From Bugula neritina (taxonomy: Eukaryota; Animalia; Bryozoa), in the NCBI GenBank assembly GCA_964035545.1, contig OZ037766.1, positions 20,448,767 through 20,512,766 of the forward strand: a stretch of DNA of 64,000 bases. Reading direction: 5' to 3'. Positions 45,291-62,593 of this stretch are shown piece by piece (within the stretch, counting starts at the first letter, position 1; the number at the start of each line of letters is the position of its first letter). The notes under the pieces are model-generated. The model was not told the DNA's origin and did no database searches. It saw only the letters and a program-made list of their open reading frames with translations. A program made the position numbers and the translations under genes.

Positions 45291-50191
<4,901 letters not shown>

Positions 50192-52181: not shown

Positions 52182-55100
52182 TTAGTGGATATTCAAAGGC
52201 AGTGCAGAGAGCTGGTCAGCCATAAGAATAGGGAGGTAGGCATTGCACTCTGGGGAATCATAGTACACCAGACAGTCATCCACCACGTCATCATCCAGTG
52301 TCAAGGGTAACCATTCTCTGGCAAGTGATGTGGATATCTACAGCAAATGTGGATATCTACAGCAAATGTGGATATCTACAGCAAATTATATGGATATCTA
52401 CAGCAAACGTAAATGTTCCAATACTACAGTCATTTCGAGGTTCAGCTTCAACAAATCTAACAAATCTGAAATCTTACAATTGTGTTGTCCCAAATGCTAC
52501 TAGTATTAACAACGCAATGCTCTCCTTAAAACATATTTTGTCTGTATTGACGTTTATCAAAAACCGACATTACTAGTTGATACGAGAAACAACAAACCTC
52601 TTCGCAGAAAGTCTCAAAAGACATGGCATAATCCTCCTCAAACTCTGAGTCATTGTTGTTGAAGGCAGTAATGCACTCTTCAAGAACTTCAAATTTTGTC
52701 AGCTGCATGCCTCGAAGTCTGGCGACAGCAAGGACATCGTGTTCCCTGAGAGCCACCCCTGTTGTGTAGAGGTGCGAGAGCTGTTGATGCTACTTTATAT
52801 TATGTGATGAACACAATACCGTGCACAAACAAGTTAACGTGACATATGATTGGGACACTGATTCTGACCAAACATTGCAAAAAGCAGAGTCTTGAAAACT
52901 GACTGAAAGCTTTTCTGTCACTTTTGTATCCCCAGACACCTTGAGGTTTACTTATTACCACTAAAATAGTTTTCTTTTTTAAACAGTGAAAACAATGTAT
53001 TCTGCAATGTAAAGACAGAAACTCAAAATGACTGTGGGATAACGAGAAAAAGCACAAACATAAAACAAGTGCTATAATCTACACACGCATGCACATATAA
53101 AATAATACGTAATGTAGTATAACAAACCTATAACAGAAAAGGAGGACAATTTCTTACACCTCCATGACATCATGACAAATGGATCCTGTTCATCAACTCC
53201 AATATCATAGAATATTGGACCTTCTCTCATGCCTACCAATAAAAAAACATTACTGACATCCAGTATCATTACAATACACTTTCAATATGTTTTAGCTATC
53301 AAGTTTTTGCAAAAAAAACATATTACCTAAAAGTACTACCTAGACTCTAAACTGTCTATTTCAGAATGACACATAATAATTACAACTCTATATCATACTA
53401 CATATACCCAGCGGTTGATACACTATAAACTCTAACCTACAGAAAATATGGTGTGCAGAGTGTATGCCCTAGGCAGTGAACAAAGCTGAGTAGTAGGTAA
53501 ATGCATCTCTGTTTCAGAAGAAATAGCAGTGCTTTTTGTAAATGTAATAAGTCAAAAAGATTGCTTTACATGCATTTAACCAACTCTTGAAAAGTCTATT
53601 TAAAAGAAATTGTCCTTTTGAGCAGATCGAAGCTTCTGGGTTTGATCAACAACATTTTACAAGGTAGCTACACAACACGACTAATCACACACAAAATAAG
53701 TAACATTGCAAAGTCTTGAATGGGCACATTACTCCAACATCAAAGAGTCATCCTTGCATTTGTTAGGTTAGCGCAGACTAGCTGTGACCTAGTAAACCAG
53801 TTTATGGTTCAGATCTTAGCCTTACTTTCAACAATTACAAGAGACTGAAGGGTGGAACACTGGTGACGCGCCACGTGATGCAACCCTGAAACATAGAGCT
53901 CATCACAGAAGAGCACTCTGAGATGAGTGAGAGGCATACTGGCATTCACCACTGTCATCATGTCACGCACAGCTTCGGCACACTTGATGAGATTGAGAGT
54001 CAAAGTCAAATCTGGACAGCTGCAATGAAAGTAAGACACTACGTAATCACATAAAGCAGTTGAACTGATAATATAACAGTCACAGCCTAGTCACAACTTT
54101 GATCAGTTTAGCTTCTTAAAGGTAAACACCAAAGACCATCATTCACACTGTAGGTCCAAGAAAAAATATGACGAAAATTGAAATTAAATATTCAAGTTCT
54201 TTGCAAATAGTAAATTTTTTCAACAGTTATAAAAATTTATACTATAATAACAGCGGTCACACACCTCTGGTGAACCAGGTTCCAAGTACGATCTCGAATT
54301 TGTCGAACACCTTCCTCGTGTGTGAATATGTTAATGTTGAGAGACACGAGTTTTGCTCTGCCTCCCTCAGTCAGACTGGTTAGCAGCAAGTCAGAAAGAT
54401 CAGCCATGTCGAGACTCAAGTACTGCAGACCTCTCAGCATCAACAGATCCTGTATACCTATGGGTTGGTACACACACACCTCTGATGATTGGCAACGGCT
54501 GTAAGCAAAGTGATAGAAAGTTACTCATCCATTTACATTAAGCTGTAAGCAGAGATATGAACCAACACCAGTCAAACATGTCCTATTAAAAGGATTTGTT
54601 TCGATAAATTTAGAAATAAAAAAGGAAGTGTCTCAAAATGATGTTCCATCTTTCGTAGTTTAGGCGATTTAGAGCATTACGTCATCGAGCAAGGCAGATA
54701 GCAGACTTACTAGCAAACCAGCATAAACTTTAAGACTTGGCCTAAATGAAGTGAATCATTCTACTCTATTAAGCTTTGGTTTCCCTAAATGCAATCCAGT
54801 AATTATTAAAATACTGACCTTATATGTAATGACTTTATGCTACTTGATTGATACTGACTCAGACATTCCACAATCTCATTGTTAAATTGTGTTAAACTTG
54901 GTAGATGTTGTGTTGTATAGATAAATACTGCAATGAATTACTACCAACTTTCTTACTGTCACTATACACTTTATTATCTCAAATCTCGAAGCTAACTGAC
55001 CCACTTGATAAACAAACAGTATGTCACAACAGTTACATAGCACTTTTAAAACCACAACATAATTACTTTGACAGCATAATTGTATAGCTATAACATTCCA

Positions 55101-58100
55101 CAATATAAGGCTACTAGCAGGTATAAGTCATGGGATAATATATACATAGCTTTAGTAAACAGATACAAACATTACATTTCCCCTTGATCTCAAGATCATA
55201 ATTGGTTTACAATTAATTAATATAAAAGTCTGCCATCCACTGAGGTGGTCTCCTGTCTCTTGTTATACGGCTTCCTTCTTCCTGGTTGGCCTCATCCACA
55301 ACTTCAGGATTGCCAATTCCCCAACTGCAAGTTTCACTGCCATCTAAATCACTGTTATTGCCATCACTTTCATCAGATACCTCCTCATTAATACCAAGAC
55401 CAGCATCACCACACAGTTCAATATCAACTTCAGTGCACAAATGACTGATAGCATCATTTTGATCACCTTCATTTTGTCGTGCAAGCCTCACATCAGCAAC
55501 ATGGCGGTTTACTCCATCTATTTCTACAACTTTGTCAGATATTAGCTTTGTGACAGTGCCTTGCTTCCATTTTGTATCACATCTAACCTTCCCCGGCTTA
55601 ACAAAAACATTATCTCCTACTTTGTAGGAATTAGTCCCTGTCTGTTTAGCAGGGAAATCTCTTTCTAATTCCTTTTCTACAGGCTCCCTTGGCAACCTCG
55701 GATGATAAGCATGAATAGCAGCAGCAGGTATGATACCAACAGAGTTAGGTGTATTGTTGTACCAAAACACCATGCATTCAGGGGTTTTTCCAGTTCTCGC
55801 CACCATCCTTTTTATTGTTCTATGGTTTCTCTCCACTATTCCATTTCCAGAGTGCTTGTATGCACAACAAAATATCAGTGAAACACCCCAGTCTTCTAAC
55901 AAGTTCTTGGTTTTACTGCTCTTAAAGCACGGTCCATAGTCACAAATCAGCTCTTGGGGAGGACCTCTCTCAAGAAAAATTCTGCACAAATGCTTGAGTG
56001 CTTGGTCTGCAGTCTCATTGCTCATAGCAACCCAAATTGCAAATCTACTCGGTCCACAGTCCACTACTGTAAGATATGGTTTACCAGAAACGAATGCTAC
56101 GTCAACTGCAACTCTCTGCCAGTTTTCCTCCACATCTAAACTTCCATGTTTCCACGCTATTGGAGCAGGATCTATTTGTTTGCACATTTGGCAAGATTTC
56201 ACAATTTCTGATACAACTCTTCTATCCACTGGTATCTTCATCCTACTTACAACATGCATTGTCCGATCTACACCTAAGTGATGCCTGTTGTGAAGCTCAA
56301 TAACTTTTCTACCACGCTTTGTCATCCCTAGCGCAACAACTTTTGAATCAGGCTTATTCTTTTGAACTTTCTGTAGCCACCTTTTGGGAACACGAGTTAG
56401 AATATCAGACAGGTTCTTTTCTGATGGAACCAGCTTGATAGACAGCATAAGTCCATATTCGTCAATTAGTTGATTAACAATCTCTAGTCTTCTTTTAACA
56501 ACCATCTCGCTCAACCCACTGACCTTGGGTCTTTTTGTGTTCTCTAAAATAGACCGAAGCCAACTATAAACAGTTGCAGAGTCTGTGACCAACACTAACT
56601 TCTTAATTTTCCACCTCAGGGCAAGATTTAGTCCTTTTATAGTTGCTTCCAGCTCTGCTACATTGATGTGAGCATCATCCTTTCTAAGCCATGCACAATC
56701 TTCCACCACATGACCATCTATTTGCAAACAACATCCCATTGACAAGCTACTTGCATCACACCACATAATGCCAGGCTTGTCTTTATCAACTTCCCAAATG
56801 CCTCTCACTGGGTCTTCTTTAGTGACTTTTTCCATTATTTCTTCAATGATGTCTTGTGAATAGCTCGGAATGCGTTCTTCCCAGGCAACATCATTGGCGC
56901 TTCTTTTGACAAAACTACATGACGTTCTCAACCACCCAGCCACAGGGTAATGTCCAACCAACTTGCCACAGAGTGAGAAAAGTTCTCTTTTGGTCATGTT
57001 TTCCTGCAGCATAGGAAGTTTGCCATCTCTACACCATGCAAAGTTTCCATTGCCTACATCTCTCACTCTCAATCCTAACACTCGAGCATCATTAAGGGGT
57101 TCTGGCTCCTTAGTCACTAACCCATACATTAACAGCAGCTGTCTCACTTTATCTACCCCTACTAAACTCTTGTTGACCCAGATATCATCTATGTAATGGT
57201 CAGTTCCTTGCTTGACCTCACTATCTTGTGCCAGTACTGTGCTAATTATCCTTGACATTATTTTTGGAGCAACACTTAATCCAAATCCCATTCGAGTCAT
57301 CACATACAAATTACCTTTATACTTTACAGTTTGAAATTTCTGTAAGCTCCTACTCACATGAATTTGCAGATATGCCTTTTTTAAGTCTAAAAGACAGGCT
57401 TCAGTCCCTTGCTTTCTCCACTCACGCACCTTTTCTTGGCAAATCGCAGTGTCCTGTCCTGGCATACTCTCAACATGGCTATTGAGCTCTCGATAATCCA
57501 TAACAGGTCGAACCTTTTTGGGTTTGTTTGGCTGACTTGCAGCCATCAATGGAATTACACCATCAACTTTGCCATGTTTCTGAACGTTATACGGCTCCAA
57601 CCACCCATCTGCTACCCACTGATCTAATTCTGCTTCATACTCGTTTATATGCTCTGGTGGCACTGCATACTGTGCACACTGGTTGCTTAACTGTGGCTCT
57701 CCTATCTGCCACTTCCACTCAACAGTCCACCTCTGCCCATCAAAGACAGCTATAAAATCTGTATCCTCAATTCTTAATTTTGAAGTTGTTGGTGATATAG
57801 GTGCGGCTAATGCACACATCTTAGAGTGCCAAGAAACTTTACCATCTTTGTCAAATGTTACTCCCCCCAACTTCTTAATAATGTCAAACCCTAAAATTAC
57901 ATCTGCACCACACACCAGACTTGGTGCAACTAAACAGCGGTTTCTTACCACTACCCCATCAACCACTAACTCTACTACCACCTCGCCACCACACACTGTT
58001 GTCTCTCCATTTAGCATTGTCACTACATGTTGAGGCCCGCGCAGCCACCCTCTGATTTCTTTACACAACTTTTCACTGATTACTGTTTGTTGACAGCCTG

Positions 58101-60416
58101 AATCCACTAATGTTTTTATACGACGAGTACATCCTGAATTATTTGTGTATACATATATGAAGGGTAGCACCTCATTAGCTACTGCAGCCTTGGGGAAACA
58201 CCCGGTGCTGATGGTTCCCCTTGCCCGTTTCCCAGCTTTTCTGGGCAATTTCTTGCTATATGTGATGTTTGATCACAAATAAAACATCTCCTGACATATC
58301 TTGGCTGATAATTTCTACGGGTTGACTTGGGACATTCACGAGCCATATGTGAAGTTGAGCCACAACTGAAGCAAGCTCCCTTTGCCTTTTGGTAGCCAGC
58401 TGCACACGCCATCTCACTTTCTCTTGTACTCAGCATTATTCTTGCTCTAGCCACCAGTTCGGGCAAACTCAATTTCTCTACAGAAGCCATGGACTTTAAC
58501 TGCAAGGACACATCACCTGGCAACCCTGCCATGAAAGCGCATTTTGAAATTGGCTCTGCATCCTTCTGTCCAATATGTGCCACTAACCTTTTTATGTCTG
58601 CTAAGTAGACATCAACTGGCTCTCCATCACGCAGCACACGCTTCTGTAGCTCATCGTATGCAGTATAGCAGTTTATTCCAAAAGCTGTTAGTAGTGCAGC
58701 TTTGAGCTTCCCATAATCCTCTTTGTCACTTTCTGGTAGCTGCTTATATACTGCAAACGCTGGACCAGCCAGGAACAGGGGCAAAAATGATTCTAGATCA
58801 GTTATTTTCTGCAGCTTTGCCACCAGCTCTAATTTATCAAGCCACTCACTGAATTCTCCACTGTTGCTGTCTTCATATTTACTTATTATGTCCGAGAGCT
58901 TGACTGATGCCATTGTAATATTGTAATATGCCGAAATAGCTTGTTGTGTTGTATAGATAAATACTGCAATGAATTACTACCAACTTTCTTACTGTCACTA
59001 TACACTTTATTATCTCAAATCTCGAAGCTAACTGACCCACTTGATAAACAAACAGTATGTCACAACAGTTACATAGCACTTTTAAAACCACAACATAATT
59101 ACTTTGACAGCATAATTGTATAGCTATAACATTCCACAATATAAGGCTACTAGCAGGTATAAGTCATGGGATAATATATACATAGCTTTAGTAAACAGAT
59201 ACAAACATTACAGTAGACACCCCAGAGACAAGTGCTGTATTGAGGTGGCAGAGGCAATGATTCTTTTCAGATAGTCAATAAATCTACAATAGAAATTACG
59301 GTTATCAACTATTGTAACCAAATTCTAATAGCACTGTTACAAATAATAATAGACAACATAATGTTTAGGCTTGACGACCTAAAATGTGAACATGGATTTT
59401 TTGTTATCGTAATTTTTAGCAACAACAAAAATCGAAATGATTAAGTCATGAATTGTGACTTGGTAAAAGAACTTGTCAAATTCAACACAGAGAAAAATCA
59501 ACTATTTTCATTTTGACATTTGTCCTACGCATTATTTTAATGTAACTTACTGAAGATTGGGTGCTGATTCGTCCTTGGAAAAATTTGCACGGAACTTAAT
59601 GGAAGTTTTCCTGTCATTAGCTACCTCATTAGCTAAGGTTGAGTTTCGATGAAATGCCACTGGTGGATATGAAGTATTAGTATAAATCATGTCTAAAGGT
59701 TGTTTCCAGCACGACGAATCTTGGTGATTTAGTTTATTTTCCAAAGAAGTTATTTTAGCGCTCACAAACTTACGATCACACAAACATTTATTTTGCAGTT
59801 GAGATAGTTCTATTTGGGGTTGAGCTTTTCCTATTCTCACTTTTTTTCTAGCTTCAGTTTGACTTTTACTTTTAGCTTTGCTCATAGAGCGAGTAACAAT
59901 ACCGACAGAAACAGCGGCTGAAGGTTCAGTCGGCACCTTTTGATCGTAGCAAAAACAATTTTGAGATCCATTAAGTGCACTCACAGAAGCTGCAGGTTGA
60001 GGTTCTATTGATTGTACTTCTAATTGTGGAGCCCGAGATTGCACAATTGTCAGCCGATTAATATTTTTGTTGTGGCACAAGTTATGAAGCAAACTTTCTA
60101 AATCAAAGTCCAAACTATTATTTTGTGAACTAAAATAGCCTTGATTGCAACCGTCACAGTTTTGAGTGAGTTCAGTATCTACAGGAACAAAAATAGAACA
60201 ACTACTCAAAAAATGAGAGATCATCGACTTCAAAAAATTCTCTCTACTTTTATCATGCTTAAGATACGAAAAGCTTATGTGTGACCAGTTCACTGGATGA
60301 AAGAAAAGTTCTCTCCAATGTTTGCAGGTTGCACTAGCCGAAATTTTATCCTTAAAAGAAAGATATGAATAGATGTGAAGAAGGAGAACATCTGGCACCT
60401 TCTTCCATCCTTCCAT
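52182..60416 (-). CDS. FBXO33: F-box only protein 33, disrupted in this haplotype by an LTR retrotransposon in exon 2; exons 60416-59551, 59283-59213 + 54900-54819 (split), 54498-54265, 54019-53826, 53232-53128, 52758-52598, 52337-52182
   Basis: N-terminal F-box (WKKVPDVLLLHIYSYLSFKDKISASATCKHWR). C-terminal DPFVMMSWRCKKL..G...VLAVARLRG..EV.EECI..EISTSLAREW matches the FBXO33 signature as I recall it. Removing the element and one TSD restores QHLSLGCLPSLTQF in frame. Confidence 0.85.
52328..52407. repeat. 19-bp tandem repeat (atgtggatatctacagcaa) x4 spanning the last FBXO33 splice acceptor
   Basis: Three exact copies plus one variant; the minus-strand unit is tttgctgtAG|atatccaca. Confidence 0.92.
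55213..58233 (-). CDS. pol: Pol (protease, RT, RNase H, integrase), reached by -1 frameshift
   Basis: LVDSG; LDLKKAYLQI, MGFGL, YIDD; DAS..AELEA..TDS; HxxHH..CxxC and D,D,E integrase triad; no internal stops. Confidence 0.95.
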   Translation of the reverse strand, partial: GKRARGTISTGCFPKAAVANEVLPFIYVYTNNSGCTRRIKTLVDSGCQQTVISEKLCKEIRGWLRGPQHVVTMLNGETTVCGGEVVVELVVDGVVVRNRCLVAPSLVCGADVILGFDIIKKLGGVTFDKDGKVSWHSKMCALAAPISPTTSKLRIEDTDFIAVFDGQRWTVEWKWQIGEPQLSNQCAQYAVPPEHINEYEAELDQWVADGWLEPYNVQKHGKVDGVIPLMAASQPNKPKKVRPVMDYRELNSHVESMPGQDTAICQEKVREWRKQGTEACLLDLKKAYLQIHVSRSLQKFQTVKYKGNLYVMTRMGFGLSVAPKIMSRIISTVLAQDSEVKQGTDHYIDDIWVNKSLVGVDKVRQLLLMYGLVTKEPEPLNDARVLGLRVRDVGNGNFAWCRDGKLPMLQENMTKRELFSLCGKLVGHYPVAGWLRTSCSFVKRSANDVAWEERIPSYSQDIIEEIMEKVTKEDPVRGIWEVDKDKPGIMWCDASSLSMGCCLQIDGHVVEDCAWLRKDDAHINVAELEATIKGLNLALRWKIKKLVLVTDSATVYSWLRSILENTKRPKVSGLSEMVVKRRLEIVNQLIDEYGLMLSIKLVPSEKNLSDILTRVPKRWLQKVQKNKPDSKVVALGMTKRGRKVIELHNRHHLGVDRTMHVVSRMKIPVDRRVVSEIVKSCQMCKQIDPAPIAWKHGSLDVEENWQRVAVDVAFVSGKPYLTVVDCGPSRFAIWVAMSNETADQALKHLCRIFLERGPPQELICDYGPCFKSSKTKNLLEDWGVSLIFCCAYKHSGNGIVERNHRTIKRMVARTGKTPECMVFWYNNTPNSVGIIPAAAIHAYHPRLPREPVEKELERDFPAKQTGTNSYKVGDNVFVKPGKVRCDTKWKQGTVTKLISDKVVEIDGVNRHVADVRLARQNEGDQNDAISHLCTEVDIELCGDAGLGINEEVSDESDGNNSDLDGSETCSWGIGNPEVVDEANQEEGSRITRDRRPPQWMADFYIN
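58179..58913 (-). CDS. gag: Gag with two CCHC zinc knuckles
   Basis: CFSCGSTSHMAREC and CFICDQTSHIARNC; ATG lies 28 nt inside the 5' LTR boundary. Confidence 0.93.
   Translation of the reverse strand: MASVKLSDIISKYEDSNSGEFSEWLDKLELVAKLQKITDLESFLPLFLAGPAFAVYKQLPESDKEDYGKLKAALLTAFGINCYTAYDELQKRVLRDGEPVDVYLADIKRLVAHIGQKDAEPISKCAFMAGLPGDVSLQLKSMASVEKLSLPELVARARIMLSTRESEMACAAGYQKAKGACFSCGSTSHMARECPKSTRRNYQPRYVRRCFICDQTSHIARNCPEKLGNGQGEPSAPGVSPRLQ
58183..58233 (-). other. -1 programmed ribosomal frameshift signal
   Basis: Slippery heptamer G GGA AAC (58233-58227) in the gag frame, 6-nt spacer, then stem ggggaac...gtttcccc whose loop cagc could pair with downstream gctg (possible pseudoknot). Confidence 0.85.
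58930..58941 (-). other. Non-canonical primer-binding site complementary to nt 1-12 of tRNA-Phe(GAA)
   Basis: The element strand reads AGCTATTTCGGC directly after the 5' LTR. Its complement, GCCGAAATAGCT, is the 5' end of metazoan tRNA-Phe. Confidence 0.75.
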
Positions 60417-61070
60417 ACTCTACTTTACTACTGTTCTAGTTAGCAATATTCATTACTAACATGTTTGTAAACTTTCCTACTTTTGCAAACGCACGACAAA
60501 ACGAAAATATGCAGTGAAAGTTAAGATTTTTATTGTTGTTTTAAATTATTAATTTTAGATTTTTAAAAACCATTTTTTATTTGTAATTACATTTTTTTGA
60601 ATAATTGTTTTATTTTAGTAGATCCTAAAATTGTAAACTTGTTTTACCGTAATTTTTTATAGAAAGGACAACTCCCTTTCGTTTTCAACTGTATAGCTGT
60701 AGTTGTTTATATTATATACAATCATTTCATACTTTTAATGAAGTTAACAATTTCTCCAGGTTTGACCCGATGCATTTCAAAACCACCCTATGGTCAACCT
60801 CAACTCCACACCAAGAAAAATAAATCTGGGTACAAAAATCAAGGCAATACGCAACAATTTGATGGAAAAACCACCCTGTAGATTTCATGCTTCATGCATG
60901 GTTCCACTAGCTTGATAACTTTTAGCTTAAAAATACTTTCAAACTTACATGTTGAAATTGAATCAGCTTGCTGTACAATGCAGCATTTCAACTACAGATC
61001 TAATAAATTTTTAACTCCCATTACTATTAGCAAAACCATTTTGCTTTGATTAAGTGCCGAAGTTTTTTTT

Positions 61071-62593
61071 CTTTAGGTGTAGCTTTTTTTGTTTACAGAA
61101 TGTTACTAACAGCCCTGCAGTTTTTGATTATACAGAAGATTAGAGTTTAGACTAAATTTCTCAAATGACAGCAGCTAGCTTATTAAATAACTGCAAAAAT
61201 GAAGACAGCATTTTTGATGCAAAATAAATAATATTATATTTCTAAGAGGAGGATTGTCATTCAAGCCAACATTTATTACGTAGGGTAGAAAATACTGTAT
61301 TCATTTAACAAATGACTATTATATGCCTGTGTATGTAATACTTTGTCTTATATATATATAAATAAAGCTTTTATAAATACAAAATTAATTAAACTAACGA
61401 GGGAATTAATTGATGAAATCATTTACTGCACCATATATCTTAATTGTTTATGTTCTTGTACCAAAGCTTAAATGTTCATAAAATTTAGAATGTTTTAGAG
61501 TTCAACTAAATGGTCATATTCATAGAATAATTTCTATGACTATATACATAGCATTTGTTTCTGTTGCATTGAGTAGTTGGAAAACTGAATATTAGTTTAT
61601 TAAACAAATTAAATGATTTATTTTCTAAAGAAAAATTCACAAACAGATCACATCACCAAAATATAGTATGTGCGTTGCTAGCATCAGTAAATTAACCCTG
61701 GTTGGCCCTTGTTTATATAATATGCTGGTGGTATAAAACAAGATAAGAATAGAAGCTATTAAGTTATAACAGGTGAGGACTTTCAACCACAAGTGATAAA
61801 ACATTTTCTATTGTAACTGCAAGGAACTCTACTAAAACCACCAATAAATACTCTTTGTTTGAGCTACCATTGAAATTTTAGATTTCTTATTTTTAGCTTA
61901 GGTACTATTGTTTTAACCTCATAGCAACTTTTCATGCCGCAGTTAGTTATGAAATAGCACTCCGGCCTGACTACAATCTTCGATTGACTCAACTTCAATT
62001 TTTAAAAGCATCACATATAATATGCCATATAATCGGCTTTTGTAGATGTAATTTTACTCAATTTTCAATTGACCTAGTAATTAAGGCAAGGTAAACGTCT
62101 CACAAGTAATTCACCAAGTGTAGGCTAAGCTGTGCTATACATACTAGTTTTGAGGACATTGCTTATATAATATAAGACATAAGTGATGAAGTCATGTAGT
62201 AAAAATACTAAGCCTTAAACAACGCAAGCTCGTCAGGAAAATAGAGGTATTGCTCTATATTATTATATTTCTTATTAATTTCAGCATTATACATTCATGT
62301 GCAATCATTCCTTGTTCTCACTACTGTGTGTATGTACTATGTATTGATTTGTTTCATTAATCATTACTATTGAAACTCTGTACGTCTTTAGGTGTAGCTT
62401 TTTTTGTCTAAAGAATGTTACCAACAGCCCTGCAGTTTTTGATTATACAGAAGATTAGAGTTTAGACTAAATTTCTCAAATGACAGCAGCTAGCTTATTA
62501 AATAACTGCAAAAATGAAGACAGCATTTTTGATGCAAAATAAATAAAACTATATAATTCAAAGAGGAGGATTGTCATTCAAGCCAACATTTAT
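61071..62593. repeat. Dispersed direct repeat of about 207 bp: 61071-61276 and 62386-62593
   Basis: Both copies run ctttaggtgtagc...ccaacatttat with few substitutions and lie 1315 bp apart. Confidence 0.92.

Follow-up and report, generated by a model that had tools for sequence, protein, structure and literature searches.

An intact, recently inserted LTR retrotransposon of Bugula neritina has a primer-binding site that pairs with the first 12 bases of the host's tRNA-Phe rather than with a tRNA 3' end, and dozens of related elements from several animal groups share this feature. It points to a way of starting reverse transcription for which we found no description in the searchable literature, although a prior description in subscription journals or in Repbase notes cannot be excluded. 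The element, of 4307 bp, lies on the minus strand at 54906-59212 of the window, the 64,000-nucleotide stretch of contig OZ037766.1 (assembly GCA_964035545.1, positions 20,448,767 to 20,512,766) that was analysed. Its features are collected in the table. On the plus strand the site reads GCCGAAATAGCT and the next base is the first base of the LTR copy. Read on the minus strand, the 5' LTR is followed at once by AGCTATTTCGGC, with no spacer and no TGG, and the gag ATG follows 16 nt later. The first TGG is in the gag start (ATGGCA) and has no tRNA-like continuation. The copy is young and probably active, as its LTRs are identical, there are three identical copies in the genome, and an empty-site allele is found in four other runs.

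Table. Features of the element, in window coordinates.
Coordinates	Strand	Feature	Basis
59213..59217	-	Target-site duplication TCTAC, upstream copy	Same 5 nt follow the 3' LTR; the empty-site joint has a 5-nt overlap
58942..59212	-	5' LTR, 271 bp, TG...CA, ends ...CAACACAACA	LTR pair 100% identical
58930..58941	-	Primer-binding site AGCTATTTCGGC, the complement of tRNA-Phe nt 1-12	Match to host tRNA-Phe genes; conservation across 36 lineages
58179..58913	-	gag ORF, 244 aa; two CCHC knuckles in the sequence, of which Pfam scores one	zf-CCHC, E 2.3e-09, one stretch
58227..58233	-	Candidate -1 frameshift heptamer G_GGA_AAC in the gag frame, inside the gag/pol overlap	Read from the sequence; the pol frame is -1 relative to gag
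55213..58248	-	pol ORF, 1011 aa: protease, RT, three-helix thumb (Pfam DUF7047), one RNase H, integrase	Pfam; AlphaFold model; Foldseek; integrase matches
55177..55185	-	Polypurine tract AAGGGGAAA abutting the 3' LTR	Host family B has GGGGGAAA at the same place
54906..55176	-	3' LTR, 271 bp	LTR pair 100% identical
54901..54905	-	Target-site duplication TCTAC, downstream copy	Read from the sequence; empty-site joint

Could the match to tRNA-Phe be fortuitous? The host genome has five tRNA-Phe(GAA) genes that begin GCCGAAATAGCTCAGTTGG, and the 12-mer is the exact complement of nt 1-12 of all five. For one tRNA at one fixed place the chance expectation is 1/4^12, about 6e-8, so about 3e-6 for roughly 50 tRNA species. 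Shuffles of the element give 0.015 complementary 12-mers anywhere in 4.3 kb against anywhere in the tRNA, and there is no other complementarity to tRNA-Phe beyond chance; a search for a second, bipartite contact turned up only one chance-level 8-mer. CAAGCTATTTCGGC occurs 103 times in the 216-Mb genome, against 0 for the reversed control. The Drosophila tRNA-Phe 5' probe in PMC7038984 contains the same 12-mer.

Two further host families, B (about 55% RT-RH identity) and C (46%), have unrelated LTR ends and leaders, yet carry ACA followed directly by AGCTATTTCGGC. The same holds for relatives in the insect Macrosteles and the bryozoan Watersipora, and about 30 metagenome contigs carry relatives with the site. 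The site is always 12 nt long and always abuts the LTR's terminal (T)ACA, and its variation lies at tRNA positions 4-7, where tRNA acceptor stems vary. In 36 lineages, information content is 2.0 bits at site positions 1-5 and 10, and 1.5-1.8 at positions 11-12. It is about 1 bit (0.9-1.5) at positions 6-9, which face tRNA nt 4-7, and falls to 0.8 and then 0.5 or less immediately after position 12. The RT-RH tree needs at least 7 changes of site variant, with variants nested inside the TTTC group, and two divergent elements from one assembly (JAAUYE01) share the rare CCTC variant. In the host, TTTC and its CpG-decay form TTTT are the commonest variants among the listed matches. It is interesting that one lineage carries AGCTAGCCGGGC, which appears to be the complement of the 5' end of animal tRNA-Lys(CTT), so that the tRNA would have changed while the 12-nt register was kept. 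A tRNA-Lys-type site, CAAGCCACCCGGGC, gave 0 hits in the present host. Covariation with host tRNA is shown directly only for this genome and is inferred elsewhere; ARAGORN found no tRNA genes on the metagenome and assembly loci examined.

We propose that the 12 nt following the 5' LTR are the minus-strand primer-binding site, and that they anneal to nt 1-12 of mature cytoplasmic tRNA-Phe, that is, to the 5' strand of the acceptor stem, U8, A9, and G10-U12 of the D stem. Pairing cannot go further, because tRNA C13 would face the LTR's terminal A. A usable primer therefore needs a 3'-OH at or just before U12, which means that the tRNA must be cut in the D stem. The cut could be made on the annealed duplex by the element's own RT/RNase H, as Tf1 appears to do on its 11-bp self-duplex, or a host nuclease could make a short 5' fragment beforehand. 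Extension from that end would give minus-strand strong-stop DNA, and plus-strand strong-stop synthesis would later copy the RNA primer and run off at tRNA nt 1, which would fix the site at exactly 12 nt and let the host tRNA re-template it. We put the probability of this reading at about 0.7. That the tRNA piece is the physical primer, the position of the cut, the nuclease and the re-templating are all inferred, since no molecule has been observed: all 24 public runs were available only as contigs, so that starts of strong-stop DNA could not be seen. A 12-nt 5' fragment would also be shorter than the usual tRF-5a class, which is probably 14-16 nt, and no nuclease is known to cut at U12/C13. 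Nor does the region show significant conserved RNA structure that might direct a cut, as folds of three families were no better than shuffles (z-scores 0.1-0.7). The original prediction, that a very short 5' tRNA-Phe fragment cut in the D arm may prime minus-strand synthesis, is supported, and every sequence-level test it proposed came out in its favour, though the biochemistry remains inference.

Might the site serve some other primer, or no primer at all? Sequence alone cannot tell apart different sources of the same 12 nt, and the genome holds more than 100 copies of the motif, so that a fragment of pre-tRNA-Phe, or a transcript of a tRNA-Phe-derived repeat, might be used instead of mature tRNA-Phe. 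We consider this unlikely. Complementarity stops exactly at tRNA nt 1 in all 36 lineages, as expected for a 5'-processed tRNA, and the base before nt 1 in the tRNA-Phe gene that was read would not pair with the base after the site. Apart from the tRNA genes, the other genomic copies looked at are the sites of the elements themselves, in the antisense orientation. It is similarly doubtful that uncut tRNA-Phe docks on the site only as a scaffold or packaging cofactor, with DNA synthesis starting from a 2'-OH, another RNA or a protein. The lack of a known enzyme cutting at U12 favors such a scheme, and retrons appear to show that an RT can prime from a 2'-OH. The site, however, occupies the canonical position and abuts U5 without a spacer, no alternative primer-binding site, TGG motif or self-primer exists, and this kind of priming is unknown in LTR elements.

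One might also think of the 12-mer as a conserved cis element with another role, such as packaging, translation control just before the gag ATG, or mimicry or decoy of a tRNA strand, with priming happening elsewhere. Indeed, the site lies 0-40 nt upstream of the gag start codon in most lineages, and by necessity it resembles the tRNA's own 3' acceptor strand. But its distance to the ATG varies while its contact with the LTR end is invariant, and both the variation at tRNA nt 4-7 and the apparent switch to a Lys-like 5' end in the same register fit pairing with a tRNA and not a protein-binding or translation motif. With no other primer-binding candidate, we regard this role as improbable. Least likely is self-priming of the Tf1/sushi type, in which the 5' end of the element's own transcript folds back on the site and is cut to give the primer. 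The short site without a TGG is reminiscent of self-primed elements, but the explanation is refuted at the sequence level. The window LTR has no match to GCCGAAATAGCT with up to 4 mismatches, and none of 36 elements has the complement of its own site in up to 500 nt upstream (up to 2 mismatches) or anywhere (up to 1 mismatch). Moreover, the same 12-mer follows LTRs that share no sequence.

How does the proposed priming compare with the known modes? For copia, Ty5 and Candida Tca-type elements the primer is likewise a 5'-derived piece of a host tRNA and not its CCA end, so that the tRNA must be cut; sites matching internal regions of tRNA-Arg(UCU) and tRNAiMet are listed in PMC4139406. There the site pairs with the anticodon stem-loop region, roughly nt 25-39, and the cut is in the anticodon loop, whereas here the site pairs with nt 1-12 and the cut must be in the D stem. 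Those elements belong to the Ty1/copia group with integrase before RT, and the present clade has the order PR-RT-RH-IN. In Tf1 the primer duplex is also very short (11 against 12 bp) and directly follows U5, and the primer 3' end has to be created by an endonucleolytic cut at the end of the duplex, apparently by the element's RNase H (Levin 1995; Lin and Levin 1997, cited in PMC7472051). The Tf1 primer, however, is the first 11 nt of its own transcript, while here the partner is a host tRNA acting in trans. Canonical priming from a tRNA 3' end uses a site with the same position and presumed role, which also depends on a host tRNA species and switches between tRNAs during evolution. Here there is no TGG, the opposite end of the tRNA is used, the site is 12 nt rather than about 18, and the tRNA cannot prime unless it is cut.

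A broader possibility, about as likely as not, is that a whole lineage of LTR retrotransposons spanning several animal phyla starts reverse transcription from a 12-nt 5'-terminal piece of a host tRNA, mostly Phe and sometimes a Lys-like tRNA, released by a cut in the D stem that the element directs on the annealed tRNA, with the host tRNA re-templating the site in each cycle. This would be a third fragment-priming mechanism, beside the copia half-tRNA and Tf1 self-cleavage, and would make these elements natural targets of 5' tRNA fragments. Priming is a defining step of retroviruses and LTR elements, and its known modes are few. A conserved site for tRNA nt 1-12 would add a mode needing a specific cut in the D stem, by either a new activity of an element RNase H or a host nuclease, and would link LTR elements to 5' tRNA fragments, as 3' fragments are already linked to canonical sites. 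A practical consequence is that annotation tools that look for primer-binding sites only with tRNA 3' ends would probably score this widespread clade, with more than 100 copies in this genome alone and relatives in an insect, a bryozoan and many environmental eukaryotes, as lacking one. Our literature search, which included the 12-mer itself, found only tRNA-Phe probes and the known priming modes.

What sort of element is this? Its LTR termini, target duplication, polypurine tract, CCHC-containing gag and pol order are those of an intact, autonomous Ty3/gypsy-like LTR retrotransposon, though its exact phylogenetic place was not resolved and its RT motifs (VRPVMDYRELN, LLDLKKAYLQ, YIDDI) are atypical. 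An RNase H domain with the DAS/AELEA/TDS motifs is present. Comparisons with a protein atlas, PDB sequences, PDB folds and viral folds gave only a general Gypsy/Caulimo/retrovirus-like answer, the best viral fold matches being Caulimoviridae RT-RH, followed by retroviruses, and DUF7047 is not mentioned in any searchable paper. The element is not Troyka, which has CG..CG termini and 3-bp duplications (PMC12440569), as it has TG..CA and 5 bp. It is also not Odin, which has a dual RNase H (tether plus acquired RNase H) and is reported only in sea anemones (PMC9040795); in the predicted model of the present element, a single RNase H follows the three-helix thumb directly and there is no connection domain.

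The element is read on the minus strand, where the 5' LTR is followed by AGCTATTTCGGC without any spacer, and the gag ATG begins sixteen bases later. No TGG follows the LTR. The element starts TGTAATG and ends CAACACAACA, the pentamer TCTAC flanks it on both sides, and AAGGGGAAA lies directly before the 3' LTR. The gag frame (244 aa) shows two CCHC knuckles, of which Pfam scores one, and a 1011-aa pol frame is open. Pol is in the -1 frame, and the 70-nt gag/pol overlap holds a canonical -1 slippery heptamer, G_GGA_AAC, in the gag frame.

Positions of the element and of other features mentioned in the text. Positions without a prefix are those of the window; G000 is the window's own genome, C its contigs and L individual loci.
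Feature	Position	Strand	Details
Element	59212 to 54906	minus	4307 bp
12-nt site directly after the 5' LTR	58930-58941	plus, as read here	GCCGAAATAGCT
Direct repeat (LTR), one copy	begins at 58942		271 nt
Direct repeat (LTR), partner	54906-55176		the two copies 100% identical
Slippery heptamer G_GGA_AAC	58227-58233	minus
Joint of the flanks in the empty site	54900/59213		5-nt overlap
Tandem array	49317-49786		three copies, 147-bp period, 82-100% identical
Separate repeat pair	61070-61239 / 62385-62554		170 nt, 1.3 kb apart, 97%
Host tRNA-Phe gene that was read	L003:1501-1573
Host tRNA-Lys(CTT)	L003:238-311		begins GCCCGGGTGGCT
LTR followed by AGC and unrelated sequence (L015-L018, L020)	G000 C7:14061692, C8:2226218, C6:3735723, C3:16206683, C6:4922814		LTR 95-96% identical
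LTR and intact site before a non-coding, unrelated internal sequence (L014, L022)	G000 C5:8360125 and C5:8190218
Region with LTR matches L019 and L023 and family B copy L044	G000 C1:3.00-3.10 Mb
tRNA-Phe gene L001 in that region	C1:3092273

The original prediction took it as established that metazoan tRNA-Phe(GAA) begins with the complement of this site, and for the present host this holds. A pattern search of the 216-Mb genome finds five places that read GCCGAAATAGCTCAGTTGG, and ARAGORN calls all five tRNA-Phe(GAA), with the match starting at tRNA position 1. For one tRNA at one fixed place, a 12-nt match has a probability of about 6e-8, and shuffles of the element give 0.015 complementary 12-mers when any place in the element is compared with any place in the tRNA.

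Is the site conserved among related elements of the host? The element has three identical full copies, older copies and many solo LTRs. Decayed copies show CpG-type changes in the 12-mer, which says little either way. The informative comparison is with sister families found with the RT-RNase H protein. Family B, with about 55% identity and at least ten open copies, has an LTR ending ...TATAATACTATTACA and a different leader, yet AGCTATTTCGGC sits directly after the LTR. Family C, at 46%, has an LTR ending ...GCAGGTAACA and again continues AGCTATTTCGGC. In the genome, CAAGCTATTTCGGC occurs 103 times, against 0 for the control. With the four middle positions left free, TTTC and its CpG-decay form TTTT are the commonest variants among the listed matches. 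Two loci, L014 and L022, have the LTR plus an intact AGCTATTTCGGC followed by a non-coding, unrelated internal sequence, with no second LTR within 1.5 kb, and may be non-autonomous or rearranged derivatives that keep the primer-binding site. At five further loci the same LTR is followed by AGC and then a shared unrelated sequence (ATGATGTTTGGCACACC...) in place of the 12-mer, which may reflect an LTR caught inside another repeat or a chimeric derivative.

The pol protein has hundreds of relatives at 40-73% identity, mostly on contigs of about 4 kb. A relative in the leafhopper Macrosteles (L073) and one in the bryozoan Watersipora (L074) carry ACA followed directly by AGCTATTTCGGC, and a 62%-identical relative in another assembly (L072) carries ACA followed directly by AGCTATCCCGGC after a clean 230-bp LTR. 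A scan of metagenome contigs returned 80 loci, and nearly every locus that extends far enough upstream shows a 12-mer of the form AGCTA-NNNN-GGC, 617-814 nt before the pol start and directly after (T)ACA; locus L125 was the exception, with no convincing site. Over 36 lineages, the information content is 2.0 bits at site positions 1-5 and 10, 1.5-1.8 bits at positions 11-12, and about 1 bit (0.9-1.5) at positions 6-9. It falls to 0.8 and then 0.5 or less immediately after position 12, and is low upstream of the terminal ACA. The variable positions face tRNA nt 4-7, the part of the acceptor stem that differs between species, whereas the constant parts face G1-C3 and U8-U12. It is interesting that one lineage, L111, carries AGCTAGCCGGGC, the complement of which, GCCCGGCTAGCT, appears to be the 5' end of animal tRNA-Lys(CTT), and that its sister L142 carries a related Lys-like form. 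The tRNA can therefore change while the register stays at nt 1 to nt 12. The tRNA-Lys(CTT) of the present host begins differently from the form matched by the L111 site, and no element in this host uses the host's Lys 5' end (0 hits).

Does the site track the host? An RT-RH tree needs at least seven changes of site variant, and the common TTTC form is paraphyletic, with TCGC and TCCC nested inside it. Stops in translated relatives were replaced by X. Two divergent elements from one assembly project (L095 and L107, JAAUYE01) share the rare CCTC form. In the present host, three families that differ by about half their residues all use the form that equals the host tRNA-Phe, and the Drosophila tRNA-Phe 5' probe printed in PMC7038984 contains the same 12-mer, which agrees with the insect relative. 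No tRNA gene lies on the loci of the other elements that were retrieved, so that covariation is direct for one host and circumstantial for the rest.

The site, then, is a conserved 12-nt sequence in the primer-binding position, complementary to the 5' terminus of a host tRNA, with no alternative primer encoded. From the established logic of reverse transcription, the primer's 3'-OH must lie opposite the first base of the site. That base pairs with tRNA U12, and C13 would face the LTR's terminal A, so that an intact tRNA cannot prime and a cut in the D stem is required. By analogy with Tf1, in which an 11-bp duplex is probably cut by the element's RNase H, the cut may be made on the annealed duplex by the element's own enzyme; the alternative is a short 5' fragment made by the host. 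We also infer that plus-strand strong-stop synthesis copying the primer must stop at tRNA nt 1, which would explain why complementarity ends exactly there in every lineage, and why the site can follow the host tRNA. Although neither the primer itself nor the cutting enzyme has been shown, the observation is confirmed, and the interpretation offered in the original prediction, that a very short 5' fragment of tRNA-Phe cut in the D arm may prime minus-strand synthesis, is supported at the sequence and comparative level.

Self-priming of the Tf1 type needs the complement of the site at the start of the transcript, but the window LTR has no match to GCCGAAATAGCT even with four mismatches, and none of 36 elements has one with up to two mismatches in up to 500 nt upstream. 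A second tRNA contact, as in Ty1 or Ty3, is not present, and folds of the leader in three families are no better than shuffles, giving no sign of an RNA structure at the site. The closest known systems are the copia/Ty5/Candida type, where a 5' half-tRNA cut in the anticodon loop primes from an internal site (PMC4139406), and Tf1/sushi self-priming. The present case shares fragment priming with the former and the very short duplex-end primer with the latter, but lacks the defining feature of each. Full-text searches, including searches for the 12-mer itself, found no description of a site for tRNA nt 1-12, although an older description cannot be excluded.

What kind of element carries this site? 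An AlphaFold model of pol residues 200-640 (mean pLDDT 89.6) shows predicted fingers and palm, a three-helix thumb that corresponds to Pfam DUF7047, and then RNase H directly, without a connection domain. The best solved matches are HIV-1 and foamy-virus RT, and the best viral models are Caulimoviridae RT-RH. The integrase is closest in sequence to MMTV, foamy-virus and avian retroviral integrases. The element is not Troyka, which has CG..CG termini and 3-bp duplications (PMC12440569), and it is not Odin, which has a dual RNase H and is known from sea anemones only (PMC9040795). We can only place it as a Ty3/gypsy-like lineage of unresolved position.

In contigs of four other public runs of the same organism label, or of its symbiont metagenome, the flanks are joined across the element with a single TCTAC. 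This is the empty site, so the insertion is polymorphic and recent. The flanks have high contig depth, which suggests that the element sits in a transcribed host region. Related copies (95-99%) are covered by contigs in runs that might be RNA, though the run type is only a guess and contigs cannot show molecule ends. Elsewhere in the genome, two LTR matches and a family B copy lie within about 90 kb of a tRNA-Phe gene on C1, which could be a repeat-rich region or a hint of targeting. The tandem array and the separate repeat pair in the window both appear unrelated to the element.
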